A DNA stretch of 64,000 nucleotides, from the NCBI RefSeq assembly GCF_039654945.1, contig NW_027361709.1, positions 6,448,001 to 6,512,000 on the forward strand, in the 5' to 3' direction. This document shows, one piece after another, positions 8,558-60,000 of this stretch; positions within the stretch are counted from its first letter, which is position 1, and the number at the start of each line of letters is the position of its first letter. The translations under genes and the position numbers were made by a program. The notes under the pieces are model-generated. The model was not told the origin of the DNA. It saw only the letters and a list, made by a program, of their open reading frames with translations, and did not search any database. Source of the DNA: Dendrobates tinctorius. Lineage: Eukaryota.

Positions 8558-11500
8558 CAGGGCTGCCACTAGGAATTTCGGGGCCCCATACTGGCAAAAT
8601 TTTCGGGGCCCCCTTTAGACTCCGCCCAGGCTCCATCCAGCCCCGCCTCCACCACTCGAACTGTCCACAGTCCCACCGCTCTCTTGGATAAACTCCACTT
8701 CTCACCTATCACACATTAACAGTTCCCATCACCAGGTCACACATATAGCCAGCAGCTTTTGCTTTGGCCAAAAGATTGTTTTAAGTCGCCACCATAACAG
8801 GGTAGACACTTTTGGCCAGGCCCTACTCTACTGTAACCTATTAAATATTTGTTAAAATATGCAATACAATTTAGGTATTTTTATTTTTTCAATTTTTTAA
8901 AATGACCAATAATATCACATACAAGGAACAAATACCGCTACACCATGTCCAGACCACATATTACCACCACATAGTGACCTATAATAAGACGTACAAGGAA
9001 CAAATACCGCCATACCATGACCAGACCACATATTACTACCATAGTGACCGAATAATATCACATACAACGAACAAATACCACCGCACCATGAACAGACCAC
9101 AAATTACCACCACAAAGTGACCAAATAATAGAATATACAAGGGACAAATACCACTGCACCACGCCCAGACCACATATTACCACCACATGGAGACTGAATA
9201 CTACAGTACTGACATTAATTAAAAAAACATAATACTATGACCATAAGAGACATTATACACACAAGATCTGTACTTAGTATGCAGTGTCTGTGTACAGGTA
9301 ATATAGTGATCAATGACATTATACACAGGAGCTCTGTATATAATGTACAGGTAACACAGTGATCACCGGTGACATTATACACAGGACCTCTGTACATAGT
9401 GTCAGTGTACAGGTAACACACTAACTCACCAGTGATGTCTCTAGGTGAAGTCCTTCATCTTTGTTTTTCATCTTTCATCCAGCACAGATCGCCATCACGT
9501 CTTCCAGCCAGGACTTGTCTCTGCAGGAAATATCACAGTTATCTAGAGCTCCGCTTGCAGAACACATTACTTATTTTTTCCCAACTTCTACATTACACCA
9601 CATGAAGAAAAAAAGGCGACATAGTATCACTCTACACAGTAACAGGACCGCCCCCCCATTTACAACAGTATCCTCAAGAAAATAAAATACATCACTGCAG
9701 TAATAATATCCCTTAATTAGCCCCTATGGTAATAATATCCCCCATCCTGACTCCCGTGTGTCTCATTTTTGGCTTCAGCCATATGTTCTCCCATCCCACC
9801 CTCATCAGTATCCATTCTGCCCCATATGATCTCCCCTCCTGACCAATCTGTCTAAATCGTATCCATCCTGCCCCATGACCCTGCTCCATCTATCTCCAAT
9901 CATGCCCGGTGTCTCACATTCTGCCCCCTCCTGTGTCTCACTGTCACATTCTGCCCCCTCCTGTGTCTCACTGTCACATTCTGCCCCCTCCTGTGTCTCA
10001 CTGTCACATTCTGCCCCCTCCTGTGTCTCACTGTCACATTCTGCCCCCTCCTGTGTCTCACTGTCACATTCTGCCCCCTCCTGTGTCTCACTGTCACATT
10101 CTGCCCCAGTCTCTTGCATTCTACCCCCAGCGTCCACCATTCTGCCCGCAGCGTCCAACATTCTGCCCCAGCTCACAGCCTGCCCCCATGTCCAGCATTC
10201 TGCCTCAGTCTCCAGCATTCTGCCCCAGCTTCGAGCATTCTGCCCCATGTCCAGAATTCTGCCCCAGCGTCCAGCATTCTTCTGCCCCATGTCCAGCATT
10301 CTGCCCCGTCTCACAGTCTGCCCTCATATCCAGCATTCTGCCACCAGCGTCCAGCATTCTGCCCCCAGCGTCCAGCATTCTGCCCCATGTCTATTCTGCC
10401 CCCAGTGTCCAGCATTATGCCTCATGTCCAGCATTCTGCCCCAGCGTCCAGCATTCTGCCCCATGTCCATTCTGCCCCCAGCATTCTGCCCCATGTCCAG
10501 CATTCTGCCCCCAGCGTCCAGCATTCTGCTCCCAGCATTCTGCCCCTAGCGTCCAGCATTCTGCCCCCAGCATTCTGCCCCCAGCGTCCAGCATTCTGCC
10601 CCCAGAATTCTGCCCCCAGTGTCCAACATTCTGCCCCCAGCATTCTGCCCCCAGCGTCCAGCATTCTGCCCCCAGCATTCTGCCCCCAGTGTCCAACATT
10701 CTGCCCCCAGCATTCTGCCCCCAGCGTCCAGCATTCTGCCCCCAGCATTCTGCCCCCAGCGTCCAGCATTCTTCCCCAGCGTCCAGCATTCTGCCCCCAG
10801 CGTCCAGCATTCTGCCCCATGTCCATTCTGCCCCCAGCATTCCTGCCCCATGTCCAGCATTCTGCCCCCAGCATTCTGCCCCCAGCGTCCAGCATTCTGC
10901 CCCCCGCATTCTGCCCCCAGCATCCAGCATTCTGCCTCCAGAATTCTGCCCCCAGCGTCCAGCATTCTGCATCCAGCATTCTGCCCCCAGCTTTCTGCCC
11001 CCAGTGTCCAGCATTCTGCCCCCAGCGTCCAGCATTCTGCCCCCAGCGTCCAGCATTCTGCCCCCAGCATTCTGCCCCCAGCGTCCAGCATTCTGCCCCA
11101 GTGTCCAGCATTCTGCCCCCAGCGTCCAGCATTCTGCCCCCAGCATTCTGCCCCCAGTGTCCAGCATTCTGCCCCAGTGTCCAGCATTCTGCCCCCAGCG
11201 TCCAGCATTCTGCCCCAGCATCCAGCATTCTGCCCCCAGCATTCTGCCCCCAGCGTCCAGCATTCTGCCCCCAGCGTCCAGCATTCTGCCCCCAGCGTCC
11301 AGCATTCTGCCCCCAGCGTCCAGCATTCTGCCCCCAGCGTCCAGCATTCTGCCCCCAGCATTCTGCCCCAGTGTCCAGCATTCTGCCCCCAGCATTCTGC
11401 CCCCAGCGTCCAGCATTCTGCCCCAGCATCCAGCATTCTGCCCCCAGCATTCTGCCCCCAGCGTCCAGCATTCTGCCCCCAGCGTCCAGCATTCTGCCCC

Positions 11501-16290: not shown

Positions 16291-17067
16291 TAAGGCAATG
16301 GGTACATGTGAAAAATCATAAATGGAAACTGTGCGGTCATCATTATGGCTTTGCAGGCGTCTAGGAGGCTCCACATCAGCACCCTTGTAACTGACAGACT
16401 GCCCCAGTGAGATCCATTATGGGGGATGTGAGTGGGTCGTGTAGCCGAGGTCATGGCCACTAATGGCCCAAGAAACCAGGACATGTGGGGAGTAATAGGA
16501 AAAGGGCTCCAAGTGATCTCATACCCTTCTCGTCATCAGGACAGTGCACACAGGGCCATTGTGCTGTATGTGTGGAGATATTGGGGGCATTTGGCTCCCC
16601 CTGGACCCCTTCTTCTCTTGCTCGGTGGATGAGGATGAGGAGGGTCCTTCTGTGAAATTTAGATGTAGTTTTGGTGACGTGCGCTTCCTCCATTCCTCCA
16701 GCAGAGGGCGCAGACTGTGTTAGTTCCAAGAAATTAAAGCCTTTAATTTAAAAGTCCCAATGTAACGACCCCCCCGAGATGGGGTCCGGCGGCGCCTGCG
16801 GGGGGCTCTCTCTGCACCCCCGGTGTTTATCCTAGTAGAATCACTGGGGAGCCTGAGAAATAGAGGGGTGAAGTGCAGCCCCCCACCCCTGGCTGCAGCG
16901 CTGACATAGGGAGCACCTGTTATTTTCTGTCTGGGGGGGATTTCTGGGGGGATTCTGCAGGGGGGTCGCGGTGGGAGGTGAAGGGAAGCGTCCGGACTGC
17001 AGGAATGGGGGGTCCTCGGCGCTGGGGGGGCGAAGGGTGAGGGGGGACAGGGCGGCGAAGGCGGCAG

Positions 17068-17140
17068 AAGAAACACAAGTTCCTGCAGAGAGAGGAGGAG
17101 GCGGCTGTCCTCAACGCGGTCCGCTCCGCCAGTACAAGAG
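17068..17140 (+). promoter_or_regulatory. Promoter of H1-10 copy A: H1 box plus H4-site-II-like box
   Basis: AAGAAACACA (H1/AC box) at 17068-17077 and TCAACGCGGTCC (TCAN4GGTCC) at 17111-17122. TACAAG occupies the TATA position. Confidence 0.7.
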
Positions 17141-17159: not shown

Positions 17160-17370
17160 GCTGAGCAGAGGAGGCAGCAGAGTACCGAGCAGAGGAGAGG
17201 AGGCAGCAGAGTACTGAGCAGAGGAGAGGAGGCAGCAGAGTACTGAGCAGAGGAGAGGAGGCAGCAGAGTACTGAGCAGAGGAGAGGAGGCAGCAGAGTA
17301 CTGAGCAGAGGAGAGGAGGCAGCAGAGTACTGAGCAGAGGAGAGGAGGCAGCAGAGTACTGAGCAGAGCG
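17160..17370. repeat. 29-bp tandem repeat in the presumptive 5'UTR of H1-10 copy A
   Basis: gagcagaggagaggaggcagcagagtact, about 7 copies, immediately upstream of the ATG at 17392. Confidence 0.9.
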
Positions 17371-17391: not shown

Positions 17392-17961
17392 ATGTCTCTG
17401 GAGCTGGAGGAGAATGTGCCCAGCACTGAGGAGGAGGAGGATGGGGAGGAGGAGGAGAGCCCCGCAGGGAAGAGGAGCTCCAGGAGGAAGCAGCCGGCCG
17501 CAGCCTCCTCGGGGGCCTCCAAGAGGAAGAAGAAGAAGAACCAGCCGGGCCGCTACAGCCAGCTGGTGGTGGACACCATCCGCAGCCTGGGCGAGCGCAG
17601 CGGCTCCTCCCTGGCCAAGATCTACGGCGAGGCCAAGAAGGTGTCCTGGTTCGACCAGCAGAACGGCCGCACCTACCTGAAGTACTCGGTGAAGGCGCTG
17701 GTGCAGAACGACACCCTGCTGCAGGTGAAGGGCCAGGGGGCCAACGGCTCCTTCCGCCTCAACAAGAAGAAGCTGGAGGGCGGCGGCGGGAGCCCCCCGG
17801 AGAGGAGGAAGGCGGCACCGGCCAGGAGGACTACAAGTGCCAGCAGCGCCGCCAAGAAAAGCCACAAGAAAGCCAAGAAGGAGAAGCCCAAGAAGAGCAG
17901 CAAGAAAAAGGCGGCGGGGAGCAAGAAGGCGAGGAAGAAGCCCAAAGCCAGGAAGGCGTGA
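17392..17961 (+). CDS. h1-10: Linker histone H1.10 (H1x), canonical-type copy A, 189 aa, intronless
   Basis: MSLELEE start (human H1x MSVELEE) and the diagnostic H1x globular domain [29 protein letters not shown]...[38 protein letters not shown]. Lys-rich tail; syntenic with HMCES/COPG1. Confidence 0.95.
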
Positions 17962-26170: not shown

Positions 26171-29100
26171 CAGTGGTCCCTAACCTTTTTTGCACCAGGG
26201 ACCGGCTTCAAGCAAGACCATTCTTCCATGGCCCGGCAGGGCGGGGATAGAGGTGTGACAGGGGTGGGGCTTTGGTCATAAGGGGGCGGGGCTATGGATG
26301 CGGTTGTAGTTTATCATTTAATTATAACATTTATAATGTGACTCAACTCACCATAGGTTTTGAATGAGTGGGAGCACCTGGCTTGTTTCTCTGTTTCAGT
26401 GGTAGCACCGGGCTACTTCTACTGATGACCGTCACTGCTAATGATGACTGGAACCTACAAGGAAATGGAGCATTGAGCACTTAAGAAAAATTGTACTGGA
26501 GTACTGTACATGCAGATTATTTTCTAATCATCAGAAAATGTATGAGTGGTTCCCTCCGTCCTGTCGAGCTCTGTGTGGCTCCGAGCCCTGTTGTATGCAT
26601 GGCTCCCCTGTCCCATCCTTGTATACATGGCTCTGCTCCCATCCTCCCATCTTTGTATACATGGCTCTGCTCCCACTCTCCCTCCCTTGTATTTATGGCT
26701 CCGCTCCCACTCTCCCTCCCCTGTATATATGGCTCCGCTCCCACTCTCCCTCCCTTGTATATATGGCTCTGCTTCCACTCTCCCTTCCTTGTATACATGG
26801 CTCCGCTCCCACCCTCCCTCCCTTGTATATATGGCTCCGCTCCCACTCTCCCTCCCCTGCATATATGGCTCCGCTCCCACTCTCCCTCCCTTGTATTTAT
26901 GGCTCCGCTCCCACTCTCCCTCCCTTGTAAATATGGCTCCACTCCCACCCTCCCTCCCTTGTATATATGGCTCCGCTCCCACTCTCCCTCCCCTGCATAT
27001 ATGGCTCCGCTCCCACCCTCCCTCCCTTGTATATATGGCTCCGCTCCCACTCTCCCTCCCTTGTATATATGGCTCCACTCCCACTCTCTCTCCATTGTAT
27101 TTATGGCTCCGCTCCCACTCTCCCTCCCTTGTATTTATGGCTCCGCTCCCACTCTCCCTCCCTTGTATATATGGCTCCGCTCCCACCCTCCCTCCCTTGT
27201 ATACATGGCTCCGCTCCCACTCTCCCTCCCTTGTATATATGGCTCCACTCCCACTCTCTCTCCCTTGTATTTATGGCTCCGCTCCCACTCTCCCTCCCTT
27301 GTATACATGGCTCCGCTCCCACTCTCCCTCCCTTGTATATATGGCTCCGCTCCCACTCTCCCTCCCCTGCATATATGGCTCCGCTCCCACCCTCCCTCCC
27401 TTGTATATATGGCTCCGCTCCCACTCTCCCTCCCTTGTATATATCGCTCCACTCCCACTCTCTCTCCCTTGTATTTATGGCTCCGCTCCCACTCTCCCTC
27501 CCTTGTATTTATGGCTCCGCTCCCACTCTCCCTCCCCTGTATATATGGCTCCGCTCCCACTCTCCCTCCCTTGTATATATGGCTCCGCTCCCACCCTCCC
27601 TCCCTTGTATATATGGCTCCGCTCCCACTCTCCCTCCCCTGCATATATGGCTCCGCTCCCACCCTCCCTCCCTTGTATATATGGCTCCGCTCCCACTCTC
27701 CCTCCCTTGTATATATGGCTCCACTCCCACTCTCTCTCCCTTGTATTTATGGCTCCGCTCCCACTCTCCCTCCCTTGTATTTATGGCTCCGCTCCCACTC
27801 TCCCTCCCCTGTATATATGCCTCCGCTCCCACTCTCCCTCCCTTGTATATATGGCTCCGCTCCCACTCTCCCTCCCCTGCATATATGGCTCCGCTCCCAC
27901 TCTCCCTCCCTTGTATTTATGGCTCCGCTCCCACCCTCCCTCCCTTGTATATATGGCTCCGCTCCCACTCTCCCTCCCTTGTATTTATGGCTCCGCTCCC
28001 ACTCTCCCTCCCTTGTATATATGGCTCCGCTCCCACTCTCCCTCCCCTGCATATATGGCTCCGCTCCCACTCTCCCTCCCTTGTATTTATGGCTCCGCTC
28101 CCACCATCCCTCCCTTGTATATATGGCTCCGCTCCCACTCTCACTCCCTTGTATTTATGGCTCCGCTCCCACTCTCCCTCCCTTATATATATGGCTCCAC
28201 TCCCACTCTCCCTCCCTTGTATTTATGGCTCCGCTCCCACTCTCCCTCCCCTGTATATATGGCTCCGCTCCCACTCTGCCTCCCCTGTATATATGGCTCC
28301 GCTCCCACCCTCCCTCCCTTGTATTTATGGCTCCGCTCCCACTCTCTCTCCCTTGTATTTATGGCTCCGCTCCCACTCTCCCTCCCCTGTATATATGGCT
28401 CCGCTCCCACTCTCCCTTCCTTGTATATATGGCTCCGCTCCCACTCTCCCTCCCTTGTATTTATGGCTCCACTCCCATTCTCCCTCCCCTGTATATATGG
28501 CTCTGCTCCCACTCTCCCTCCCCTGCATATATGGCTCCGCTCCCACTCTCCCTCCCCTGCATATATGGCTCCGCTCCCACTCTCCCTCCCCTGTATATAT
28601 GGCTCCGCTCCCACTCTCCCTCCCCTGTATATATGGCTCCGCTCCCACTCTCCCTCCCCTGCATATATGGCTCCGCTCCCACTCTCCCTCCCCTGCATAT
28701 ATGGCTCCGCTCCCACTCTCCCTCCCTTGTATATATGGCTCCGCTCCCACTCTCCCTCCCCTGTATATATGGCTCCGCTCCCACTCTCCCTCCCCTGTAT
28801 ATATGGCTCCGCTCCCACTCTCCCTCCCTTGTATATATGGCTCCGCTCCCACTCTCCCTCCCCTGTATATATTGCTCTGCTCCCACTCTCCCTCCCCTGT
28901 ATATATGGCTCTGCTCCCACTCTCCCTCCCTTGTATATATGGCTCCGCTCCCACTCTCCCTCCCCTGTATATATGGCTCCGCTCCCACTCTCCCTCCCTT
29001 GTATATATGGCTCCGCTCCCACTCTCCCTCCCCTGTATATATGGCTCCACTCCCACTCTCCCTCCCTTGTATATATGGCTCCGCTCCCACTCTCCCTCCC

Positions 29101-30935
29101 TTGTATATATGGCTCCGCTCCCACTCTCCCCTGCATATATGGCTCCGCTCCCACTCTCCCTCCCCTGTATATATGGCTCCGCTCCCACTCTCCCTCCCCT
29201 GTATATATGGCTCTGTTCCCACTCTCCCTCCCTTGTATATATGGCTCCGCTCCCACTCTCCCTCCCCTGTATTTATGGCTCCGCTCCCACTCTCCCTCCC
29301 CTGCATATATGGCTCCGCTCCCACTCTCCCTCCCTTGTATATATGGCTCCGCTCCCACTCTCCCTCCCCTGTATATATGGCTCCGCTCCCACTCTCCCTT
29401 CCTTGTATATATGGCTCCGCTCCCACTCTCCCTCCCCTGTATATATGGCTCCGCTCCCACTCTCCCTCCCCTGCATATATGGCTCCGCTCCCACTCTCCC
29501 TCCCTTGTATATATGGCTCCGCTCCCACTCTCCCTCCCCTGTATATATGGCTCCGCTCCCACTCTCCCTTCCTTGTATATATGGCTCCGCTCCCACTCTC
29601 CCTCCCCTGTATATATGGCTCTGCTCCCACTCTCCCTCCCTTGTATATATGGCTCCGCTCCCACTCTCCCTCCCCTGCATATATGGCTCCGCTCCCACTC
29701 TCCCTCCCTTGTATATATGGCTCCGCTCCCACTCTCCCTCCCCTGTATATATGGCTCCGCTCCCACTCTCCCTTCCTTGTATATATGGCTCCGCTCCCAC
29801 TCTCCCTCCCCTGTACATATGACTCTGCTCCCACTCTCCCTCCCCTGTATATATGGCTCCGCTCCCACTCTCCCTCCCCTGCATATATGGCTCCGCTCCC
29901 ACTCTCCCTCCCCTGTATATATGGCTCCGCTCCCACTCTCCCTCCCCTGCATATATGGCTCCGCTCCCACTCTCCCTCCCTTGTATATTTGGCTCCGCTC
30001 TCACTCTCCCTCCCTTGTATATATGGCTCCGCTCCCACTCTCCCTCCCCTGTATATATGGCTCTGCTCCCACTCTCCCTCCCCTGTATATATGGCTCCGC
30101 TCCCACTCTCCCTCCCCTGCATATATGGCTCCGCTCCCACTCTCCCTCCCCTGTATATATGGCTCTGCTCCCACTCTCCCTCCCCTGTATTTATGGCACC
30201 GCTCCCACTCTCCCTCCCCTGCATATATGGCTCTGCTCCCACTCTCCCTCCCCTGTATTTATGGCTCCGCTCCCACTCTCCCTCCCCTGCATATATGGCT
30301 CCGCTCCCACTCTCCCTCCCCTGCATATATGGCTCCGCTCCAACCCACCCTCCCTTGTATATATGGCTCCGCTCCCACTCTCCCTCCCTTGTATATTTGG
30401 CTCCGCTCCCACTCTCCCTCCCTTGTATATTTGGCTCCGCTCACACTCTCCCTCCCCTGTATATATGGCTCCGCTCCCACTCTCCCTCCCTTGTATATAT
30501 GGCTCCGCTCCCACCCTCCCCTGTATATGGCTCCGCTCCCACTCTCCCACCCTTGTATATATGGCTCCGCTTGGCTCCCCCATCCTCCCCCATCATTCTT
30601 ACCCTCACATTTCTGACCTTCCTTCCCGTCGCTGAACTTCCCTCCCTGCATCTCGCGGTGCTTTAGCTCCTGTGCGGAGCGATCACGTGCTACCGCTCAT
30701 TACGGTGCATGAATATGTACGCCATGCCTATGGGTGATGAGTGGCGTCCATATTCATGACCTTAATTGAGCAGTACACTTGACCGCTCAGCGCTGGATGA
30801 AGCCGCCGCGCCGGCAGGGACCGCTAGGTGAGTATCAGCTTCTGCACCACCGCCGGCTCCCCTTGTGTCCGCGGACCGGCAAGGGCACTGCAACGGCCCA
30901 GTGCTGGGCCTCGGACCGGTGGTTGGGGACCCCTG
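26171..30935. mobile_element. Non-autonomous hAT (Charlie-like) element carrying a ~4-kb minisatellite
   Basis: TIRs CAGTGGTCCCTAACC / GGTTGGGGACCCCTG and a perfect 8-bp TSD GTCTATGT (26163-26170 and 30936-30943). Confidence 0.9.
26590..30570. repeat. 34-bp minisatellite (ccttgtatatatggctccgctcccactctccctc), >110 copies
   Basis: Directly visible; generates the spurious 950-1391-aa ORFs. Confidence 0.97.
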
Positions 30936-32295: not shown

Positions 32296-32798
32296 NNNNN
32301 NNNNNNNNNNNNNNNNNNNNNNNNNNNNNNNNNNNNNNNNNNNNNNNNNNNNNNNNNNNNNNNNNNNNNNNNNNNNNNNNNNNNNNNNNNNNNNNNNNNN
32401 NNNNNNNNNNNNNNNNNNNNNNNNNNNNNNNNNNNNNNNNNNNNNNNNNNNNNNNNNNNTGTGTATGTCTGTGTGTATGTATGTCTGTCTGTGTGTATGT
32501 ATGTCTGTGTATGTCTGTNNNNNNNNNNNNNNNNNNNNNNNNNNNNNNNNNNNNNNNNNNNNNNNNNNNNNNNNNNNNNNNNNNNNNNNNNNNNNNNNNN
32601 NNNNNNNNNNNNNNNNNNNNNNNNNNNNNNNNNNNNNNNNNNNNNNNNNNNNNNNNNNNNNNNNNNNNNNNNNNNNNNNNNNNNNNNNNNNNNNNNNNNN
32701 NNNNNNNNNNNNNNNNNNNNNNNNNNNNNNNNNNNNNNNNNNNNNNNNNNNNNNNNNNNNNNNNNNNNNNNNNNNNNNNNNNNNNNNNNNNNNNNNNN
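32296..32798. other. Two unresolved or masked N runs (32296-32459 and 32519-32798) around a TG-rich microsatellite
   Basis: N characters in the sequence. Confidence 0.95.
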
Positions 32799-33430: not shown

Positions 33431-35506
33431 TAATGATGGGGTGGTGGGGGAAAAATAAATGATGATGGGGTGGTGGGGGAGAATGCAATGATGTGGTGGT
33501 GGAAAGGACAATAAATGGGGGTGGTGGAGGAGGAGGAAATGATGGAGGTGGTGGAATGGGCAATGATGGAAGTGGTGGGGGAGAAAGCAAAGATAGTGGT
33601 GGGGGAGAAGAAAATGATGGAGGTGGTGAAGAGGACAATGATGGGGTGGGGGAGAGGACAATAATGGGATTCGAGGGGAGGAGGACAATGAGGGGTGTGG
33701 GGAATTGGGATGGGAGGAAGGGGGACTTATAATGGCCTTAGGAACAGGGGGAGGTGGAGGAAGACATATCGCTTATTATGTCTAACACAGTCCCTTAGTA
33801 TATAGTGTACTCACTATGTCTAACACAGTCCCTTTGTATATAGTGTACTCACTATGTCTAACACAGTCCCTTAGTATATAGTGTACTCACTAGTTCTGTA
33901 TAACACCATCCTTAGTTACATAGTTTCCTCTTTTATTATGTATAACACCATCCCTTATTACGTATCATCCTCTCTAGTTATATACGTATTTTGCCGTCCC
34001 TTATTATATAGCTTCCTCTGCTGTTATGTATAGTGCTGTCTCTTACATAGTGTATTCTTGTTAATTTTGTTATTTACAGCGCCCTCTTTTATTACATAGT
34101 CCCCTCTCTTTTTAGATACAAAACGACTGCTGATCGAGGAGCCGGTGACCAGACGACCAGTCCATCAGCTCCTCCATTAGAAAGGAAGCTTTCCCATGCT
34201 CCATCAGCCATCATTGCATTATACAGCCAACAAGACAGGACGGCATGTGATAAAAAACAGGGCTCTATATAATCCAATATGTAAGGGACGGTACTGTACA
34301 TAACAAGAGAGGGCACTGTGTAATAAGGGACAGCAATATACATAATAAAGGAGACTATGTAATATATATACCTGTATGTGTGTGTGTGGCTATATAATAT
34401 CAATATCCATCTATACACACACACACGTAGCTTTGACGCCATAAAAGGAGGGGGGCCCGGACACATTTCTTGCACAGGGACCCCAAGCTGTCAGTGTCCG
34501 CCCCCTGTCCGCCAAAATAATTTGTACTTTCTGTTTTTTTTTTCTGTCACATTATTAAAAATTATTATTAAAAAAGCCATTAGGTCTTCATCCAGCATCA
34601 TCAAGCTAATACATACTTATAGAGAGAACTGCAAGATGAAAGTCTAGAAATGTAGAAATAATAACAGCCGAGTTAGTAGCAGCCTAAAAATTAGATCTTT
34701 GAGTGTAGTGTGGGCTCTTCGGATGCTTCCGGATTATCAATGACCAAAGGGGTGGCAAATTTTTCGACCGCCCCGGGTGCCACGAACAGTTGCTACGCCA
34801 CTTATTGTGATTCTAGAATCCATTATCTGTGGTTTACATAGGACTGCAGGGAAATCTGCTACATTATATCAGCAAGTCACTGCCATGTCCAAAACAAATA
34901 AACTACAAATTCATACAAGAACACTGATATAATTTGGCACGTCTCAGGATTTTACATAGGACTGCAAGAAATCTCCAGTTAAAGCCCTGACTGACTCTGC
35001 CCAGCAGCTGGGTGACACATTCAGCTCTGCTACATCATTCCTATAGTTTGGATCCTTCTCCCCAGACAGGGTGGGTGGGTGCCAGGACCCCCCACATATA
35101 CAGTGGCAGCCTGGGATCCCCCTGCAGCCGCAGATCACGTGGGGGGCGCCCTGTGTTACTTGCACCAATTTAACCCCCCTCTATCTCCAGCCCGGCTGAG
35201 CCCAGACCCCCCAAATAAATCCGCATCTGTCCCTTGAAACCCCCTCTCCTGGTCCCGACCCTGATCCCCCCTGATCGCCCCCGGGAAACCCCCGTAAATC
35301 GCCCCCCAGTGTCACGCCTCCCCACCGCTAGGGCTCCGGCAGCCTGGGGAGACGCCGATCAATCCGGGGATTTCAGGGTTAATAAGGCCGAGATCGGGGT
35401 CGGTTCCCGCGCAGATCGGTAGCGGGGGGTCCCGGGTGCGGGGGGCGGTGCGGGTCCCGGTGCTGGACGCTCCCGGATGGCAGAAAATGGCGCAGAACTG
35501 AGCGGG

Positions 35507-35581
35507 AAGAAACACAAGTTGCGGGGAAGCGGCGCAGGGAGCTGTTGTTGTTCCCAACGTGGTCCGCACCCTCCGTATAAA
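35507..35581 (+). promoter_or_regulatory. Promoter of H1 copy B: H1 box, H4-site-II-like box and TATA box
   Basis: AAGAAACACAAGTT at 35507-35520, CAACGTGGTCCGC at 35555-35567 and TATAAA at 35576-35581, about 45 bp upstream of ATG 35622, within a CpG-rich region. Confidence 0.75.
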
Positions 35582-35621
35582 GGAGGCGGAGGAGGCGGGG
35601 CCGGGACCAGAGAGAGGGAAC

Positions 35622-36158
35622 ATGGCGCAGCGAGAGGTCGCCCCGGCCACCCCCGGCAAGAAGTCCGGGGGCAAGAAGAAGAACCAGCCGGGCCGCTACA
35701 GCCAGCTGGTGGTGGACACCATCCGCAGCCTGGGCGAGCGCAGCGGCTCCTCCCTGGCCAAGATCTACGGCGAGGCCAAGAAGGTGTCCTGGTTCGACCA
35801 GCAGAACGGCCGCACCTACCTGAAGTACTCGGTGAAGGCGCTGGTGCAGAACGACACCCTGCTGCAGGTGAAGGGCCAGGGGGCCAACGGCTCCTTCCGC
35901 CTCAACAAGAAGAAGCTGGAGGGGCTGGCGGTGCCCACGAGGAAGACTCCGGCCCCCAAACCGGCCGCCAAGAAGCCGGCGGCTCCGAAGAAGAGCCCCA
36001 AGAAGGCGAAGCCGGCCCCCAAGAAGAGCAGCAAGAGCCCCAAGAAGGCGAGCGGGAGCCCCAAGAAGAGCAGCAGGAGCCCCAAGAAGGCGAGCGGGAG
36101 CCGGGCCCCCGGCAAGAAGGCGAGCAAGCCCAAGGGGCTGAAGGCCAAGAAAGCCTGA
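35622..36158 (+). CDS. Second H1.10(H1x)-type linker histone (copy B), 178 aa, short basic N-tail and SPKK-rich C-tail
   Basis: The ATG in aacATGg context lies downstream of the TATA box. The H1x globular domain is identical to copy A and the tail carries four SPKK motifs. AATAAA at 36548-36553. Confidence 0.92.
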
Positions 36159-36547
36159 GAGACCCCAGAGACTGTGCCCGAGCGAGGCCGAGGGGGCTGG
36201 AGAAAGCCCCCCACACTGTGCCCGAGGGGGCTGAAGAAAGCCCCCAGAGCCCAGACTGTGCCCCCCCGCATCCCCCGCGTTCTATTTGTTTATCTTCCAG
36301 GATGATCTTTGATACTTTGTTGCAATTTTTTTTTTCCCCTTTTGACGCTTTCGCTCCAGAGACAATAGCACTTATTCTTCTTCTTCTCCTGTGCAGGGTG
36401 TAAGGGGTTAACCCTGCTGACACTTTATTATGTTTTATTTTTTTTTAAGAATTTGATTATCTGTTTGTTATTGTTTGCATGTGACGTATAACTTTTTTTT
36501 TTTTCTACGGTCTGTAGAATATTTGTTTTTTTTATATATAATTTTTT

Positions 36548-36553
36548 AATAAA
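36548..36553 (+). terminator. Polyadenylation signal of H1 copy B
   Basis: AATAAA ends an AT-rich 3'UTR; no histone stem-loop seen after the stop codon. Confidence 0.65.
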
Positions 36554-39500
36554 ATAACAAATGTCTCATGAGGAGGATTTCGTTTTTTACCGTTTTTCTT
36601 TATAGTTTTGGGGGGAGGGGAGTGGTTTGAACACTTTGTATAGCACCATAAATTCCACAGCATCACAGTGCCCATTGGGGCTCATAAAATAGAAGACATG
36701 GAATCAATGGTGCTATAAAAATTTAAAGCCAGGTCAATATTTAGTGTTTTTATATCAGTATTTGTTTATCAAAATACAGTGAAACAATCCGAGACGTATT
36801 ACAAAGTGATGACGTGTTTCTAGCCCCCATTACTGGCTTTGGATTACAAATACTGATCTAAAAGACACAATGTCTCCCAATGTTACCAGATTTGGGGAAA
36901 ACTACAACTCCCAGCATTTCCTTTACAGATTGGGAGTTGGAGTTTTATCCCAGGTCTTGTGTTCTGGTTATTAACTGCAGATATTGTCATTGGGGGGGGG
37001 GGCGGGGGGCAGCCTTCATTTATTTAAAGGGATTGTCTATCCTAAAGTAAGCGCAGTACCTGTTCCTGCAGCCTCCTGAATACGCCGCTTCCCCAGTGCA
37101 GGTATTGAGCGCTGAGGATTCAGCGAATCCTTGCAAAGTACAATGCCTGCATTTGGGGGGGGATTCAGAAGTCTGCAGTCAGTGATTGAAAACTTTTCAT
37201 TTTGGCCTGAACAACCCCTTTAAGTTCTCAGTTTCATCTTTATGTAATCATCATATTGAAGTAACTTTTTTAAAATCTGGATTTTGCTTTTTGAAAAGTG
37301 CCGATAAATCCATTCATTTCGCACATCGCTGCTGCCAATCGCTCTCCTGATGTAGAGCTCTTGTGCTGCTCAGTGACTGGCAGCAGCGGTGAAAGATCAC
37401 AGAGAAGCCAGAGCAGCCCTGAGGAAGGGTGAGAACTTCTTGGCATTGTGTACACAAGATATTTTTCAGGCAGATTGCAATCCTAACGTGCACCATCAAA
37501 AATTAATTCTTGCACAGTAACGTTAAAATCCAATTTGCTGGTGCAGGTTCCATCTTGCCATTTCTTTTAACCACTTAAGGTAAGGAAACCATGAAGTGGT
37601 TAACAAAAGTGACATGCGCATTCGTCCTAGAGTAAGCTGACCACTCGCTATACGCAACCCCATACTGCGTGAATGGAAATCTGCAAGTGTTTGCATGGAA
37701 GATGTGACTACGGCGCCAGTGTCTAAAAGGCGCCGTGTGCACAGGGCCCGAGGCTGTTATGTTACATTACTGGAGTCATTTCTGGCACCAGAGTGGGAGC
37801 TAATTAATTCCCAGGATCAGAGTTGTAACGTCAAGCTCTTGGGTCCAAACTTTCATGGGTCTGTATTGATCTATTCCTATGGGACAAAAGGTACTTTTTT
37901 CCCTCCCTCCTCCCGATTAGTTGCAGCGCCCCGCACATGTGACCTCTCTCCATACGAGCCCAATCGGTAAGAGGTGGTTTTCGGGGCTCCTGTCCCAGAG
38001 GTGTCACAGATTACTGACGTGACCAATGGGATCAGGTGCTGCGAATAGATTTGGACCAACTATCTTGCACTTTTCTAAAAGTTGGAAACCCCTTTAAATA
38101 GTCTAGGGGGACTGTGGTGCTCCTGCGCATTGCCACATACACCTCGTCCCTAATCTAAATGCAATGATCTGCAGGATCAGACACGTATTGTAGGGGGGTC
38201 TCTTGCTGTGCTGGACCCACTAACCAAACATTGTTGGGCAGTCTTAAGGATAGACGATCAGTATTCTAGTCCTGGAGAACAGGTTTATGCCTGAAACAGC
38301 GCCACATGTCAGTGTAGGCTGTGCAAGGTATTACAGCTCTGCCTTATTCACTTGCTAGGAATGAGCTGTAGTTTCAGACAAAGGGTTAAAAAAATAAAGT
38401 CTTGGTCAGCCCATGTAACAGTAAAGGCCATGTGCTGGGCATCAGTGTTTGGTTAGATGGTGTCCGACGGAGTAATAGTACCTATAATGATTCAGTATCT
38501 CCTGATGCAGGGACTGAGAGTGAGGGGCAGCAGCCAAGAAGATTCCTTTATGGTGCCCCCTGATCTAGATAGAAGTCTGTCAGTGGCCGGAGCGCTCCTT
38601 TAATTATTTGCTGCTGGGTTTTCTCACTTTAGACCCTTATGACATCCGCAGGAAGACGAAGACCTCCTTATAAAGGGTGATCCCATCTCATAAAGTGATG
38701 GAAAATCACCAACTTTATGAACAGCGGGGGTCCGGCCTCCAGGACCTTCACTAATGCCTTCAGCTTATTTTACTGCAGAGCAGCACTCATAGTTCTGCAG
38801 GAGACCGCTTCTTCACGCACTGTACTTGGAATCCCAGGCACCATAACGGGGGCTACAGAGCTAAATGCGGTCTCGTTACATGATCCAGAAAACGCATAAC
38901 CGTTGTTTTAGTTAGTTAGCAGGTGCCATAAACTGCCTCTTTTCTGGAGCCTCCTTCGCTGGCACGCTGCCTGTTCGTGGCGTCATCAAGAAAGAAAATA
39001 GAAAAACACAAGACCTTTAAATGTCGTTTTTTGGTTTCTTTGTAAATGTGAATTTTTGTTACTTTTTGATAAACACTTCTAAAAGCATTGTGACCAAGAA
39101 CAGAACTATAAGGACAGAAGGACTGCAGCCCGGTGGGAGTTGTAGCTGTGCAGTGGCTGGAGAGCACTAATCCCGGGGGATCATGTCCCCAGACACCTCA
39201 GGGGACACCTTGTATTTTGCAGACCCCCCCATCCTACGTACAGTGCACGGTCGTTACATTTGGGGCACAGCTCAGTTTTCTATTTATAATGGGGGACCGA
39301 AAGTGTCGTAAATGCCAACAAAGTCCTGGGGGTAACTGTGTCACAGCGCGGTGGTTTCATGCTACGTGACACACGGCACAGCTGTGTGTGGGGGGTCGGC
39401 ATGTCATGGTGAACCCTAAACAATACCATCCCAGTTGTTGGCAGCAGCTGCTACTTTCTATGACAGCTGCTACAGTCCAAAACTACAGGGCACCACCATG

Positions 39501-40524: not shown

Positions 40525-41595
40525 GTAATGTATGTACACAGTGACTGCACCAGCAGAATAGGGAGTGCAGCTCTGGAGTATAATACAGGATGTAACTCAG
40601 GATCAGTAATGTATGTACACAGTGACTGCACCAGCAGAATAGGGAGTGCAGCTCTGGAGTATAATACAGGATGTAACTCAGGATCAGTAATATGTATGTA
40701 CACAGTGACTGCACCAGCAGAATAGTGAGTGCAGCTCTGGAGTATAATACAGGATGTAACTCAGGATCAGTAATGCAATGTATATACACAGTGACTGCAC
40801 CAGCAGAATAGTGAGTGCAGCTCTGGGGTATAATACAGGATGTAACTCAGGATCAGTAATGTAGTATTTGTATACAGTGACTGCACCAGCATAGTGAGTG
40901 CAGCTCTGGGGTATAATACAGGATGTATCTCAGGATCAGTAATGTAGTGTTTGTATACAGTGACTGCACCAGCAGAATAGAGAGTGCAGCTCTGGGGTAT
41001 AATACAGGATGTAACTCAGGATCAGTAATGTAGTGTTTGTATACAGTGACTGCACCAGCAGAATAGTGAGTGCAGCTCTGGGGTATAATACAGGATGTAA
41101 CTCAGGATCAGTAATGTAATGTATGTATACAGTGACTGCATCAGCAGAATAGTGAGTGCAGATCTGGAGTATAATACAGGATGTAACTCAGGATCAGTAA
41201 TGTATGTACACAGTGACTGCACCAGCAGAATAGTGAGTGCAGCTCTGGGGTATAATACAGGATGTATCTCAGGATCAGTAATGTATATACACAGTGACTG
41301 CACCAGCAGAATAGCGAGTGCAGCTCTGGGGTATAATACAGGATGTAACTCAGGATCAGTAATGTAGTGTTTGTATACAGTGACTGCACCAGCAGAATAG
41401 TGAGTGCAGCTCTGGGGTATAATACAGGATGTAACTCAGGATCAGTAATGTAATGTATGTACACAGTGACTGCATCAGCAGAATAGTGAGTGCAGCTCTG
41501 GAGAATAATACAGGATGTAACTCAGGATCAGTAATGTAATGTATGTACATAGTGACTGTACCAGCAGAATAGAGTGCAGCTCTGGAGTATAATAG
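40525..41595 (+). repeat. 81/86-bp satellite (cagtgactgcaccagcagaatagtgagtgcagctctggagtataatacaggatgtaactcaggatcagtaatgtaatgtatgtaca)
   Basis: About 12-13 tandem copies; same family as 57255-58480 in the opposite orientation. Confidence 0.95.
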
Positions 41596-43928: not shown

Positions 43929-44342
<414 letters not shown>

Positions 44343-47986: not shown

Positions 47987-50900
47987 TTATTTCCTCGGCC
48001 TCTTTGGCGACGGCTCTCCTTCTTTCTTCAGCCACTGGTGCATTAACCCCGCACTCGTCTTCTTGGGTGACAAAGCGAGCTGAGAAAGTTTAGCCGGCGG
48101 TTTAACCCCTTCTGGTTCCTCTTTCTTCGGAGATTTATTTTGTAGCCACGCTAACATCTTCTTACTGCTGGCGCTCAGAGCGGGCTCCTGTAAGAAAATA
48201 CAGTAGGGATATTAATGTAGAGCAAGCAGGAAAAGGATTCTTCATCATCGTGGACTGGACCCCGTTATCTTTTTTTTTTTTCTTATCATCGCCGCCATCT
48301 TTGTACTCCAATGTGGCCTCCATAGTGGACGGTCATTATTATTACTATACACTACAGTAGATCGTGCAAACGATCGCAGGTTCAAGTCCCCTAAGAGAGC
48401 TAAAAATATTATAAAAATTATCCCCTTTTCCTAAATAAACTAAAAGTTAAAAAAAAGCAAGTATATTTGGTATTATCAAGGCTGCGAAAGACATAAACCT
48501 ACACAGTAAACTAATAAATATGTATAAAAAAAATAAAATTGAACATTTAATTTATTGTTGTGCAGACTTGCCTTCTTCTTCTGCAGGATGATGGGAGTGA
48601 TGCATTCGGGGCTGTTGTTCCGAGAGTTGTTCACGATGGTGGACACAGGGTGGTAGGTGATGTTTTCGATGGGCTGTATAAGTTTCAGCGCTTCTTTGGC
48701 AGGAACATCTCCAAAGTCCAGCCATTTCTGGATCTCCTCATCACCGTCCAGTATCGCCGGCATCCTGGTGAGAGAGAACAAAGATGTCTTATACAGGAAC
48801 AGGAGCAGAATTGTGTCCGAGGGAAGAGGTCCCATCGGCTTCTGGCCATCACACGGGGGTCTCGGCCGGCATCTGTAGATGGGACCGCACTACTCATCTT
48901 CTGCGGGGCCAACGAACCCTTTAAAGCTCATAGAGGACATTTTTGCGCTGATTTCTGTAGTGTAAGTAAATGTGAAATTAGTATAATCTCAGTCTAGAAA
49001 ATGGAAACGGCGGCGCTGACAGACAAGCTGGTGTGCGCAGGAAGAGACACTTTCCGCTTCGCCAGCTCTGAGTCAATAAGAAACCGTTCAGCAGAGGCGC
49101 GATACAGAGGTCGGCACTTTCACTAGTTACACCATCACAAACGCCATGACCTGAGGATGATCTGGCGGGGGAACAGAAGACACAGGGTTCAGGCGGTTTA
49201 AGAACGGGGCTCATCAGCTGTCATATCAGCCCTGTGACCGGAAATACAGAAGAACTACACAGGTCACGCCGCCAGATCGTGCAACAAAACACACATGCAA
49301 TTTTTCTGCGACTTGTTTTAAAGTCTATGTGGGAAGTTACAACCAGAAACACAACGATGTTGAATTATTTTTTTGCAATGGTTGTGTCACAGTCAGTCTC
49401 AGCCACGGAAGATCATTACATGCCACGCTGCAAAGCGGCACCGCAAGCTTTATGCCTAGAAAGAAAACCTAAAATATAGTGTTGATTTTGTGGAATCTGC
49501 AGAATAAGCCTTTAATGTAAAGAATGAGAAGGTTCCAGCCTTCCACCTTCACGACTGCATGTGCACACTCACCTGTCCGCTGAAATTAATGGGAGACATG
49601 GAAGGGGTGAGACTCAGGAGGTGCCATAGATAAGGGAGGCTTTTACTTACCGGTCATGAATCCAATTCATACTTTTGGAGGCGTCCACTGTGATAATAGT
49701 GTAGGAATAAAGAGGGTCTCCGCATCCTGCAGGGGGGTCCCAGAGGTCAAACAGTCCAGCCATGGTGAGCAGCCTCTGCTCCCCTCCATCGGGACCGTCC
49801 TTAGTGTCTTCATACTGGAGAGAAATAATAAAAAATCCAACACAGATTTATGTATAAACTCCAGAAGGTGAACAGCGTTCAGATGAAAGACAGCAAGCAG
49901 AGATCCTGAAAACAGTGAGGCGTGTTTCATGATCTAAAAATGAGTTTTTCTTTGCTGGCACCTGTTCAGATTTGACCTTCGGGAAGTATATAAAGTACGG
50001 CTGCTTCTCCCCGTCCTGTCGTCTCCACTCATAGAATCCGTCCGCCAGAACCACACATCTCCGGCCTTTAAAAAACGGCCCCTGGGGGAAAGAAGAGGCC
50101 ATATCTTTAGGAGGCACAGCTGACACCCCCCAATCATTTGAGCCACCCCCTCCCCAAGTAGCAATCTGTGGGTGGTCTCCGGAATCCCACTCGCCTTATA
50201 CAGAGTCTTCTCGCACATGGTGTCGCTGCGGCAGTTGTTGGTGCTATATTGCATTTTAGATGGGTTTGATTCTGTGAACCAGGAGGGGATAAGACCCCAG
50301 CGCATGGCGGCGAGGACTCGCTCCGAAGAGTCAGCATCCTGGCGGCAGAAAAGAGAAGGCTTGAAAGGGTTTTGACGATCGCAGTTTTCAAGATCACTGC
50401 TTGCTCTCAGCACCCATTCTGGTCATTGGCGTTACAGGGCAAGTCAAACAGGAGTCTTGTAGAAAATTAAGCACCCGACCCGGAAAAGGTGCAAAAAAAA
50501 AGAAAAAAGTTTCCATTCCCTGACCACAAGCAGAGATCTTATAAACTGCAGGAATATGAAAAATATACATGATACATGTTTGCAAAACCAAAACCATTTG
50601 CAGATTCTATTGTAGATGCACTGAAACAATGGAATGTGCACAATGCAAGAATTTGGGGGGGTTTTGGGGAAGATTAGAAGTGCCTCTTTAAGCGGCTGGA
50701 GTCCACCTGATAAGGGATTGCGGGTGGTCCTGCTGCCCCCCTTCAGGGGTCAGAGAGAAAAGCTATGGGGTCATGATCCCCTAATCTACGCACTGATGGG
50801 GTCCTACATTGATGATATATCATAGTGCCCCCTCCTCACCTCTGCCGACCCCCCAGCTGTACAGTCCTGTTACCTTCTGGAAATGCTTCATGGACAGGAG

Positions 50901-57019: not shown

Positions 57020-60000
57020 TTAACCAACTGATGCCATGATGGCGTCGACTGGATACTCCTCCTTACTCCGGGCTGTAACCTGCATAGTCACCGTGTCTGT
57101 CAGGACCAACTTTGCCCGTACCAAGATGTCATGGCCACCCCGAAATACACCTGTAAAACAATCAGAAAGACTCAAAGCAATGGAAAACCCATCCATACCT
57201 ATTGTACAACTAAGTCGTGACACCTTTTAAACATATTATACTACTTATTGGGTACTGATCTGTATTATACTCCAGAGCTGCACTCACTATTCTGCTGGTG
57301 CAGTCACTGTACACATACATTACATTACTGATCCTGAGTTACATCCTGTATTATACTCCGGAGCTGCACTCACTATTCTGCTGGTACAGTCACTGTGAAC
57401 ATACATTACATTACTGATCCTGAGTTACTTTCTGTATTATACTCCAGAGCTGCACTCACTATTCTGCTGGTGCAGTCACTGTGTACATACATTACATTAC
57501 TGATCCTGAGTTACATCCTGTATTATCCTCCAGAGCTGCACTCACTATTCTGCTGATGCAGTCACTGTGTACATACATTACTGATCCTGAGTTACATCCT
57601 GTATTATACCCAAGAGCTGCGCTCACTATTCTGCTGGTGCAGTCACTGTGTACATACATTACACTACTGATCCTGAGTTACATCCTGTATTATACTCCAG
57701 AGCTGAACTCACTATTCTGCTGATGCAGTCACTGTGTACATACATTACATTACTGATCCTGAGTTACATCCTGTATTATACTCCAGAGCTGCACTCACTA
57801 TTCTGCTGGTGCAGTCACTGTGTACATACATTACTGATCCTGAGTTACATCCTGTATTATACTCCAGAGCTGCACTCACTATTCTGCTGATGCAGTCACT
57901 GTGTACATACATTACTGATCCTGAGTTACATCCTGTATTATACTCCAGAGCTGAACTCACTATTCTGCTGGTGCAGTCACTGTGTCCATACATTACATTA
58001 CTGATCCTGAGTTACATCCTGTATTATACTCCAGAGCTGCACTCACTATTCTGCTGGTGCAGTCACTGTGTACATACATTACTGATCCTGAGTTACATCC
58101 TGTATTATACTCCAGAGCTGCGCTCACTAGTCTGCTGGTGCAGTCACTGTGTACATACATTACATTACTGATCCTGAGTTACCTCCTGTATTATACTCCA
58201 GAGCTGCACTCACTATTCTGCTGGTGCAGTCACTGTGTACATACATTACATTACTGATCCTGAGTTACATCCTGTATTATACTCCAGAGCTGCACTCACT
58301 ACTCTGCTGGTGCAGTCACTGTGTACATACATTACATTACTGATCCTGAGTTACATCTTGTATTATACCCCAGAGCTGCACTCACTACTCTGCTGGTGCA
58401 GTCACTGTGTACATACATTACATTACTGATCCTGAGTTACATCTTGTATTATACTCCAAAGCTGCACTCACTATTCTGCACATTTTAGCCAAAGACATTT
58501 CTTGCTGGCTTAATACTAACTGATATACACTCACTGGCCACTTTATTAGGTACACCATGCTAGTAAGGGGTTGGACCCCCTTTTGCCTTCAGAACTGCCT
58601 CAATTCTTCGTGGCAGAGATTCAACAAGGTGCTGGAAGCATTCCTCAGAGATTTTGGACCATATTGACATGATGGCATCACACAGTTGGCGCAGATTTGT
58701 CGGCTGCACATCCCTGATGCGAATCTCCCGTTCCACCACATCCCAAAGATGCTCTATTGGATTGAGATCTGGTGACTGAGGAGGCCATTTGAGTACAGTA
58801 AACTCATTGTCATGTTCAAGAAACCAATCTGAGATGATTCGAGCTTTATGACATGGCGCATTATCCTGCTGAAAGTAGCCATCAGATGTTGGGTACATTG
58901 TGGTCATAAAGGGATGGACATGGTCAGCAACAATACTCAGGTAGGCTGTGGCGTTGCAACGATGCTCAATTGGTACCAAGGGGCCCAAAGAGTGCCCAGA
59001 AAAAATTCCCCACACCATGACACCACCACCACCAGCCTGAACCGTTGATACAAGGCAGGATGGATCCATGCTTTCATGTTGTTTACGCCAAATTCTGACC
59101 CTACCATCCGAATGTCGCAGCAGAAATCGAGACTCATCAGACCAGGCAACGTTTTTCCAATCTTCTACTGTCCAATTTCGATGAGCTTGTGCAAATTGTA
59201 GCCTCAGTTTCCTGTTCTTAGCTGAGAGGAGTGGTACCCAGTGTGGTCTTCTGCTGCTGTAGCCCATCTGCCTCAAAGTTCGACGCACTGTGCGTTCAGA
59301 GATGCTCTTCTGCCTACCTTGGTTGTAACGGGTGGCAATTTGAGTCACTGTTGCCTTTCTATCAGCTCGAACCAGTCTGCCCATTCTCCTCTGACCTCTG
59401 GAATCAACAAGGCATTTCCGGCCACAGAACTGCCGCTCACTGGATTTTTTTTCTTTTTCCGACCATTCTCTGTAAACCCTAGAGATGGTTGTGCGTGAAA
59501 ATCCCAGTAGATCAGCAGTTTCTGAAATTCTCAGACCAGCCCTTCTGGCACCAACAATCATGCCACGTTCAAAGGCACTCAAATCACCTTTCTTCCCCAT
59601 ACTGATGCTCGGTTTGAACTGCAGGAGATTGTCTTGACCATGTCTACATGCCTAAATGCACTGAGTTGCCGCCATGTGATTGGCTGATTAGAAATTAAGT
59701 CTTAACACACAGTTGGACAGGTGTACCTAATAAAGTGGCCAGTGAGTGTATACATATACAGATCAGTGCCATGTTATTGTTATATATAGTTCACCATTTG
59801 GACCAAGTTCAGAAGAACACTTACCTGCCAGGTACAGGGTATGAGCATTTTTGTTCTCTGGCACTTTATCAGACCTCTCACATGGCTGCATTCCCAGGAA
59901 CTTTATTACATTTCCAACGGCATCTGTGGATAAAAAGACATCCCCAAGTCAGATTTGGCCACAAGATAAATGATGAAAACCAAATAAAATACAATATCCA

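Follow-up and report, generated by a model that had tools for sequence, protein, structure and literature searches.

Two tandem H1.10-type genes

The window, by which the entire analysed 64-kb stretch of the Dendrobates tinctorius genome is meant, contains two intronless linker histone genes, located 18 kb apart on the same strand. Gene A (17392-17961, forward strand) encodes a protein of 189 aa of the canonical H1.10 (H1x) type, with its globular domain set between an acidic N-tail and a basic C-tail. Gene B (35622-36158, forward strand) encodes an amphibian H1.10-like paralog of 178 aa with a short N-tail, a globular domain, and an SPKK-rich C-tail. Both open reading frames carry the Linker_histone domain (PF00538; aa 54-124 of A, E = 5.7e-16; aa 25-95 of B, E = 7e-16). 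A tblastn search of the 64-kb window found only these two genes and no third H1-like copy.

In protein searches, the best matches of A were the A-type proteins of Engystomops, Pyxicephalus, and Hyperolius (annotated as "histone H1.10-like"), and the nearest relatives of B were the B-type proteins of Eleutherodactylus, Ranitomeya, and Leptodactylus. The named top matches, from amphibians, mammals, birds, and reptiles, are almost all labelled "histone H1.10", "H1.10-like", or "H1x"; only two, both B-type proteins of frogs, bear other labels ("H1.1-like" and "H1-like"). Both genes are thus closest to H1.10/H1x and not to somatic H1, H1.0, or oocyte H1. Many anurans possess two H1.10/H1x genes on one chromosome. 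The A-type proteins have in common the N-terminal motif MS[LV][EQ]LEE.VP and an acidic run, and because the N-terminus of amniote H1.10 reads MSVELEE, A represents the canonical H1.10. The B-type proteins are characterized by an N-tail of the form MAQ.EVAPA... and the C-terminal motif KPKAL[RK]AKKA.

Both genes resemble vertebrate H1.10 (H1x, H1FX) in the winged-helix sequence (NQPG[RK]YSQLVV...), and the lack of introns and of a 3' stem-loop, and B also has a candidate poly(A) signal; further likenesses are the MS[LV]ELEE N-tail that gene A has in common with amniotes and the location of the locus near HMCES. Amphibians differ in having a second, tandem gene B with another N-tail and an SPKK-rich C-tail, whereas no second H1.10-type protein of one amniote genome was present among the matches listed.

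Aligning the sequences upstream of A and B in three frogs revealed a promoter element of ~60-90 bp that is common to A and B and has the conserved core CAACG.GGTCCGC. The promoter of gene B (35506-35581, forward strand) comprises an H1-box-like GAAGAAACACAAGTT (35506-35520), the conserved GCTGTTGTTGTTCCCAACGTGGTCCGC, and TATAAA (35576-35581); that of gene A (17067-17138, forward strand) comprises the same GAAGAAACACAAGTT box (17067-17081), the conserved CAACGCGGTCCGC, and TACAAG (17133-17138). The difference between TATAAA in B and TACAAG in A is paralog-specific in all three species, with Engystomops and Spea agreeing with the window. A 29-nt unit, CTGAGCAGAGGAGAGGAGGCAGCAGAGTA, is repeated about seven times in tandem in the likely 5'UTR of A (17160-17367), five of the copies being exact (17214-17358). 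Because of this expansion, which is absent from the A genes of Engystomops and Spea, the shared promoter element is located at -324..-238 in A as opposed to -115..-26 in B.

RNA contigs of B begin at 35609. In the 3'UTR of B, cDNA-type contigs extend to ~36522, short of a candidate poly(A) signal (AATAAA, 36548-36553, forward strand), and show no poly(A) tails. A search of the whole window against Rfam at the gathering threshold returned no histone 3' stem-loop and no member of any other RNA family. These features of the sequence would fit a classification of A and B as replication-independent, polyadenylated genes of the H1.10 type.

Two synteny markers follow gene B. The first is an H2A-type gene (43929-44309, reverse strand), an open reading frame of 126 aa that starts with MSGRGK, lies between B and HMCES, and has a short C-terminal tail. 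The second comprises exons of HMCES, a gene with an SRAP domain (47988-49817, reverse strand), which were located by tblastx with the HMCES regions of Leptodactylus and Engystomops; HMCES probably extends past 49817. A large tandem array of a 34-bp unit (~26478-30500; at least 116 copies that are 90-99% alike) is situated between A and B in a C-rich setting with a strong negative GC skew. The same interval contains two runs of N, either gaps or masked sequence (32296-32459 and 32519-32798), neither of which touches A or B. Two repeat-rich blocks that are 16 kb apart (40525-41577 and 57260-58479) are connected by many overlapping inverted matches of 180-509 nt with 93-96% identity and look like opposite-facing arrays of one satellite or transposon-derived repeat.

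An identical block between diverged tails

The sequence of gene B at 35673-35923 (forward strand) is identical to that of gene A at 17530-17780 (forward strand). Direct comparison of the two stretches of 251 bp yielded zero mismatches, third codon positions included, exactly as an earlier note on this DNA had claimed, and the identity cannot be extended by a single base at either edge; the adjoining 50-200 bp on each side show only 36-43% identity, which corresponds to the random level. The block starts in codon phase 0 of both open reading frames and encodes the winged-helix globular domain (aa 47-130 of A and aa 18-101 of B). It spans the Pfam domain together with KKKNQPG in front and KKKLEG behind; the peptide landmarks given in the earlier note (KKKNQP, KKLEG, and MSLELEE...) are correct.

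The same note described the tails and untranslated regions of the two genes as unrelated. This holds for the N-tails and the 3'UTRs, for which no similarity between A and B was detected, but not for the C-tails and promoters, which have kept a weak homology. In the C-tails, the blastn alignment extends beyond the block at lower identity (to 36036 in B and 17905 in A), and a global alignment scores 0.55 vs 0.10 for shuffled sequences. The tails are diverged homologues rather than unrelated sequences.

The C-tail of B contains a tandem duplication of 42 nt (36017-36058 and 36059-36100; 41 of 42 positions identical), which doubles an SPKK-containing unit. Contigs of sequencing run X15, which stems from another individual, have an additional in-frame AAGAAGGCG behind position 36113. 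Because of this 9-nt insertion, the tail of B is considered indel-polymorphic, while the adjoining block is invariant.

Block and tails have conflicting phylogenies

The nucleotide comparison covered the 84 codons (252 nt) of the block in both paralogs of six frogs, namely D. tinctorius, Leptodactylus, Nanorana, Engystomops, Spea, and Pyxicephalus; Ranitomeya, the closest relative, and Rana temporaria are outside this set. The two copies of D. tinctorius differ at a single position, the 252nd base, which lies beyond the exact block. The paralogs of the other species differ at 5 (Leptodactylus), 9 (Nanorana), 10 (Engystomops), 13 (Spea), and 34 (Pyxicephalus) of the 252 positions, and sequences taken from different species differ from one another at 22-44 positions. 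The synonymous divergence (NG86 dS) between A and B of the same species is 0.017-0.19 in five of the six species and 0.92 in Pyxicephalus, compared with a median of 0.48 among orthologs.

The tree comparison proposed in the earlier note, carried out with these six frogs, gave the outcome expected for conversion: the globular domains group by species and the tails by paralog. In the block tree obtained by maximum likelihood, each A gene pairs with the B gene of its own species in all six frogs (support 79-100). A topology that unites all A genes in a clade is worse by 168 log-likelihood units (AU test, p = 3.6e-60), which rejects the clustering of globular domains by paralog that would have contradicted the note. 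The tail tree consists of an A clade and a B clade (support 100 and 99); the tail alignments are of low complexity, and the split in this tree rests on the clear motifs of the N-tails and C-termini. The nucleotide identity of the N-tails is 0.41-0.81 among orthologs and 0-0.26 among paralogs, values from a semi-global matrix that supports only this broad contrast and includes a few degenerate entries (0.00-0.03) caused by free end gaps.

The pattern of substitutions in the block agrees with the trees. Across the six species, there is not a single site in the block that is diagnostic of a paralog. Five sites carry derived states that are exclusive to the two copies of D. tinctorius, including the replacements K->S and N->S, and each of the other species has one to four sites with species-only derived states that are common to both paralogs, as illustrated by the KKVPWFD motif in both copies of Leptodactylus. 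The discordance between the block and tail trees supports the first explanation offered in the earlier note, according to which the duplication is old, conversion keeps the winged-helix regions of the two copies alike, and the tails specialise.

The limits of the homogenised tract vary. The longest exact runs between A and B are 251 nt in D. tinctorius and 173, 131, 112, 75, and 38 nt in the other species of the set. In Engystomops, Leptodactylus, and Nanorana, the differences are concentrated near the edges, and the long stretch between them is exact (P = 0.01-0.03 if differences were placed uniformly). In Spea, the similarity between A and B continues for ~60 nt into the C-tail, and the same is seen at the protein level in Pelobates. 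Also at the protein level, A and B of Hyperolius have identical globular domains that both contain QPGK, the B-type state in ranoids, and in Rana temporaria, five residues of the 5' half distinguish the two copies, which have the TLVQ of A in common in the 3' half. The differences in tract limits among lineages point to independent events, and conversions of varying extent and direction would leave such patterns. Homogenisation is neither universal nor continuous, because A and B of Pyxicephalus differ at 34 sites (dS 0.92); this pair looks long unconverted.

The variation among lineages also bears on the second explanation of the earlier note, a recent domain swap. One such swap, or a chimeric duplication confined to this lineage, by which the globular segment of one gene was inserted once into an otherwise unrelated H1 gene with no ongoing process, would account for the zero differences and razor-sharp edges of the D. 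tinctorius pair. However, the same mosaic is present in Engystomops, Leptodactylus, Nanorana, and Spea, and at the protein level also in Hyperolius and Rana, and the nucleotide data of the first four show 5-13 differences, other tract limits, and shared substitutions specific to the respective lineage, which points to a recurrent process rather than a single swap. Moreover, the B-type tails are orthologous across frogs, so that B cannot be a new chimera. A single swap is therefore improbable, and the last event in D. tinctorius, though recent, is one episode of the recurrent process.

The identity is reproduced by independent samples and exceeds codon bias

Since short identical repeats are a known hazard in polishing, and the evidence comes from assembled Logan contigs, which drop rare variants and do not represent single DNA molecules spanning a locus, and not from raw or long reads, the identity of the block could in principle be an artefact of assembly, polishing, or collapse, with the true differences of one copy overwritten by reads from the other. 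Both loci are present in DNA runs of the probable source sample and also in numerous small runs that other studies and samples of the same organism contributed; for gene A, 83-99% of the sampled words were found in small runs of independent samples. Four runs, among them three samples independent of the assembly, were compared over the region 35200-36700, and their contigs contain no alternative letter inside the block.

The contigs also join the block to its flanks. Run X6, which is considered a cDNA library because of its remnants of SMART template-switch and Nextera adaptors, provided a single contig of 710 nt, from the mRNA of B, that covers 35609-36315 with zero differences and crosses both junctions of B. 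Contigs of runs X11 and X15 link the N-tail of A (their loose end equals 17500-17529) to the block, again with zero differences, and contigs of runs X1 and X15 exit the block at 35923 into the C-tail of A. These junctions demonstrate that, in several individuals, the identical block occurs next to the flanks of A as well as those of B. Together with the near-identity of the same segment in independently assembled genomes of other frogs, they render an artefact, which the earlier note had named as a possible refutation, highly unlikely. Both genes appear to be transcribed. RNA runs X17-X20, which stem from a second organism, contain 14-19% of the 31-mers sampled from the two loci; this organism is apparently a related species with a near-identical stretch, probably the block.

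The remaining possibility without any exchange of DNA is a combination of extreme purifying selection and convergent, species-specific codon bias. The globular protein is 92-96% conserved among frogs, and the GC content at third codon positions (GC3) is 100% in both copies of the block in the window, which fixes all two-fold codons and inflates the apparent identity; explicit codon null models were therefore computed. With two independent draws from the synonymous usage of the block itself, the probability that 83 of 83 codons match by chance is ~10^-5.7 (~2e-6); with the overall usage of genes A and B, it is ~10^-12 (~6e-13). The lone copy of Ascaphus, whose block also has a GC3 of 100%, differs from the block in the window at 13 synonymous and 6 non-synonymous codons. 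Codon bias would, moreover, require parallel substitutions for the shared replacements K->S and N->S, and it does not account for the A/T-ending codons (e.g., CCA GGA and CGA AAA) that are common to both copies in species with a lower GC3, such as Engystomops (0.82-0.86). Chance or codon bias is thus excluded as the source of the identity, in line with the remark of the earlier note that GC3 bias alone would be insufficient, and selection and bias acting on two copies that never exchanged DNA is a highly unlikely scenario.

Both paralogs predate the split of Spea, hyloids, and ranoids

In the window, gene A is followed by B on the same strand, the 126-aa H2A on the opposite strand, and HMCES. 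The same arrangement exists in Engystomops, Leptodactylus, Nanorana, Spea, and Pyxicephalus, with B located 6-18 kb downstream of A; H1.10-like genes, H2A, and HMCES occur in this order in five frogs other than D. tinctorius. The 126-aa H2A follows B on the minus strand in Engystomops, Leptodactylus, Spea, Pyxicephalus, and Ascaphus; an H2A-type gene follows B also in Nanorana, where it is cut by the end of the locus. We take H1.10 to be adjacent to HMCES also in human.

Because both paralogs are present in Spea and Pelobates, in hyloids, and in ranoids, the duplication must predate their common ancestor. Spea, hyloids, and ranoids represent roughly 200 My of divergence. The converse assumption, that H1.10 was duplicated independently in each lineage and that the similarity within species merely reflects a young age, may draw on the caecilian Microcaecilia, where both copies have A-type tails and could form a separate young duplicate, but it is hardly conceivable for the frogs, since tails, the TATAAA and TACAAG elements, and gene order are orthologous for each paralog from Spea to hyloids and ranoids, which indicates one duplication older than the divergence of these frogs.

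In the salamander Pleurodeles, one gene combines SPKK repeats with a B-like N-tail (MATVAQETAP...), the other has an acidic N-tail, and at the protein level, the two copies have salamander-specific globular residues in common. These protein sequences hint that duplication and homogenisation may date back to the common ancestor of frogs and salamanders. In Ascaphus, there is one H1.10-like gene within ±10 kb, in the position of B. This gene of Ascaphus truei (positions 10001-10558 of locus L010), whose block is the one with the GC3 of 100% mentioned above, combines a B-type N-tail, MALRQQEVAPATP, with a C-terminus of the A/amniote type, KKVKKSAKPSVPKLPKSKKA, and may represent either the state of the tails before their divergence or a chimera.

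Gene conversion as the probable cause of homogenisation

From all these results, we consider it very probable that the winged-helix region, and only this region, of the two old tandem H1.10 duplicates has been subject to recurrent interlocus gene conversion, independently in different lineages. The conversion is deduced from phylogeny, and no event was observed directly. On this reading, A and B are old tandem duplicates of the replication-independent linker histone H1.10 (H1x), whose disordered tails and promoters evolve separately and stay orthologous between species. Gene A has retained the acidic N-tail of the MSLELEE type, and gene B is distinguished by its short MAQxEVAPA N-tail and its SPKK-rich C-tail. 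The winged-helix stretch of ~250 bp, by contrast, would be overwritten repeatedly and in a non-reciprocal manner, one copy from the other.

How conversion proceeds at the molecular level, why the tracts end where they do, and whether a functional advantage follows are matters of inference. A likely route is the repair of a break in one copy with the paralog 6-18 kb away as the template. Such repair fits two paralogs in the same orientation and tract lengths between tens and a few hundred bp, as is typical of non-crossover conversion in vertebrates. The tracts would end at KKKNQPG and KKKLEG because the homology ends there, and a heteroduplex could not enter the tails because they are indel-rich, of low complexity, and diverged. 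A tract that replaced a tail would also wipe out the specialisation of the paralog, and selection against such tail-erasing tracts may contribute. Purifying selection on the globular protein would keep the block a usable substrate for conversion, so that the process could sustain itself.

The last event in D. tinctorius would have covered the whole block. It must have been recent because there are zero differences over 251 bp, too recent for any difference to have arisen; at typical neutral rates of vertebrates, a rough estimate would place it a few million years ago at most. A single site, the hyloid B-type state YGEAKK in gene A of the window, hints that the direction of this event was from B to A.

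GC-biased gene conversion is suggested by a GC3 that is higher in the block than in the tails of most species and lowest in the block of Pyxicephalus, the least-converted pair, but the evidence is equivocal. Block and tails differ in amino-acid composition, and the GC3 of 1.00 in the lone copy of Ascaphus points the opposite way and weakens any simple link from conversion to a high GC3.

It is conceivable, though rather doubtful, that homogenisation has been maintained across Amphibia for hundreds of My by selection and not by passive homology. A and B would then possess one shared nucleosome-binding module and compete for the same binding mode, with the tails alone carrying the functional difference. 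Its SPKK/CDK-type sites raise the possibility that B is a form regulated in the germline or with the cell cycle. Teperek et al. 2014 (PMC4200797) include H1fx in their list of sperm-specific proteins from Xenopus laevis, which is only a lead regarding the role of a tail-specialised paralog.

Relation to other cases of concerted evolution

Classic cases of interlocus gene conversion are the primate gamma-globin genes, RHD/RHCE, and the red and green opsins. The frog genes resemble these cases in that the paralogs of one species are closer to each other than orthologs of different species are, segments of the same gene yield discordant trees, the tracts are short (tens to hundreds of bp) and end where the homology ends, and the copies have the same orientation and are located a few kb apart. 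They differ in that the frog tract corresponds to one folded domain between disordered tails and recurs in Spea, hyloids, and ranoids.

Among linker histones, the closest precedent concerns mammalian H1.1-H1.5, where GARD breakpoints flank the globular domain (Ponte et al. 2017, PMC5400378); these putative breakpoints are situated at both edges of the domain, which is where the frog tracts end. According to the prevailing view, which the same study restates, H1 subtypes group by type and have not evolved in concert. In contrast to this birth-and-death model of the H1 family (PMC5400378), the amphibian H1.10 pair evolves in concert, but only in the globular domain. Gene conversion or unequal exchange has been invoked to explain the likeness of histone paralogs within species (reviewed in PMC13525598). 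Replication-dependent histone clusters, however, consist of whole repeated units with many near-identical genes (PMC13525598), whereas the frog pair comprises two diverged, replication-independent variants of which one internal segment is homogenised. No report on gene conversion in H1x/H1.10 or on amphibian H1.10 paralogs was found in the literature searched. The mechanism as such is well known; the frog pair is a clear, domain-resolved, and phylogenetically recurrent example from a family generally regarded as free of concerted evolution.

Implications for linker histone evolution

The H1.10 genes of frogs have consequences for the analysis of histone genes. Current annotation based on gene trees calls both genes "H1.10-like", which has left an old amphibian paralog hidden and unnamed, and orthology assignments based on protein trees of the H1 globular domain can be misleading. 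At the same time, the locus offers a small, well-bounded system for studying the length, direction, and GC bias of conversion tracts in amphibians.

Linker histones are the textbook case of histones that evolve by birth-and-death, without concerted evolution (PMC5400378); with respect to this view, the pair constitutes a clean counter-example at the resolution of a single domain. If homogenisation were indeed maintained by selection, this would be a case of long-lasting, domain-resolved concerted evolution, and the salamander copies would match the pattern, for which there are only hints at the protein level. Two H1 variants that share their globular domain and differ in their tails represent a natural experiment on the contributions of domain and tails to the function of H1 variants.
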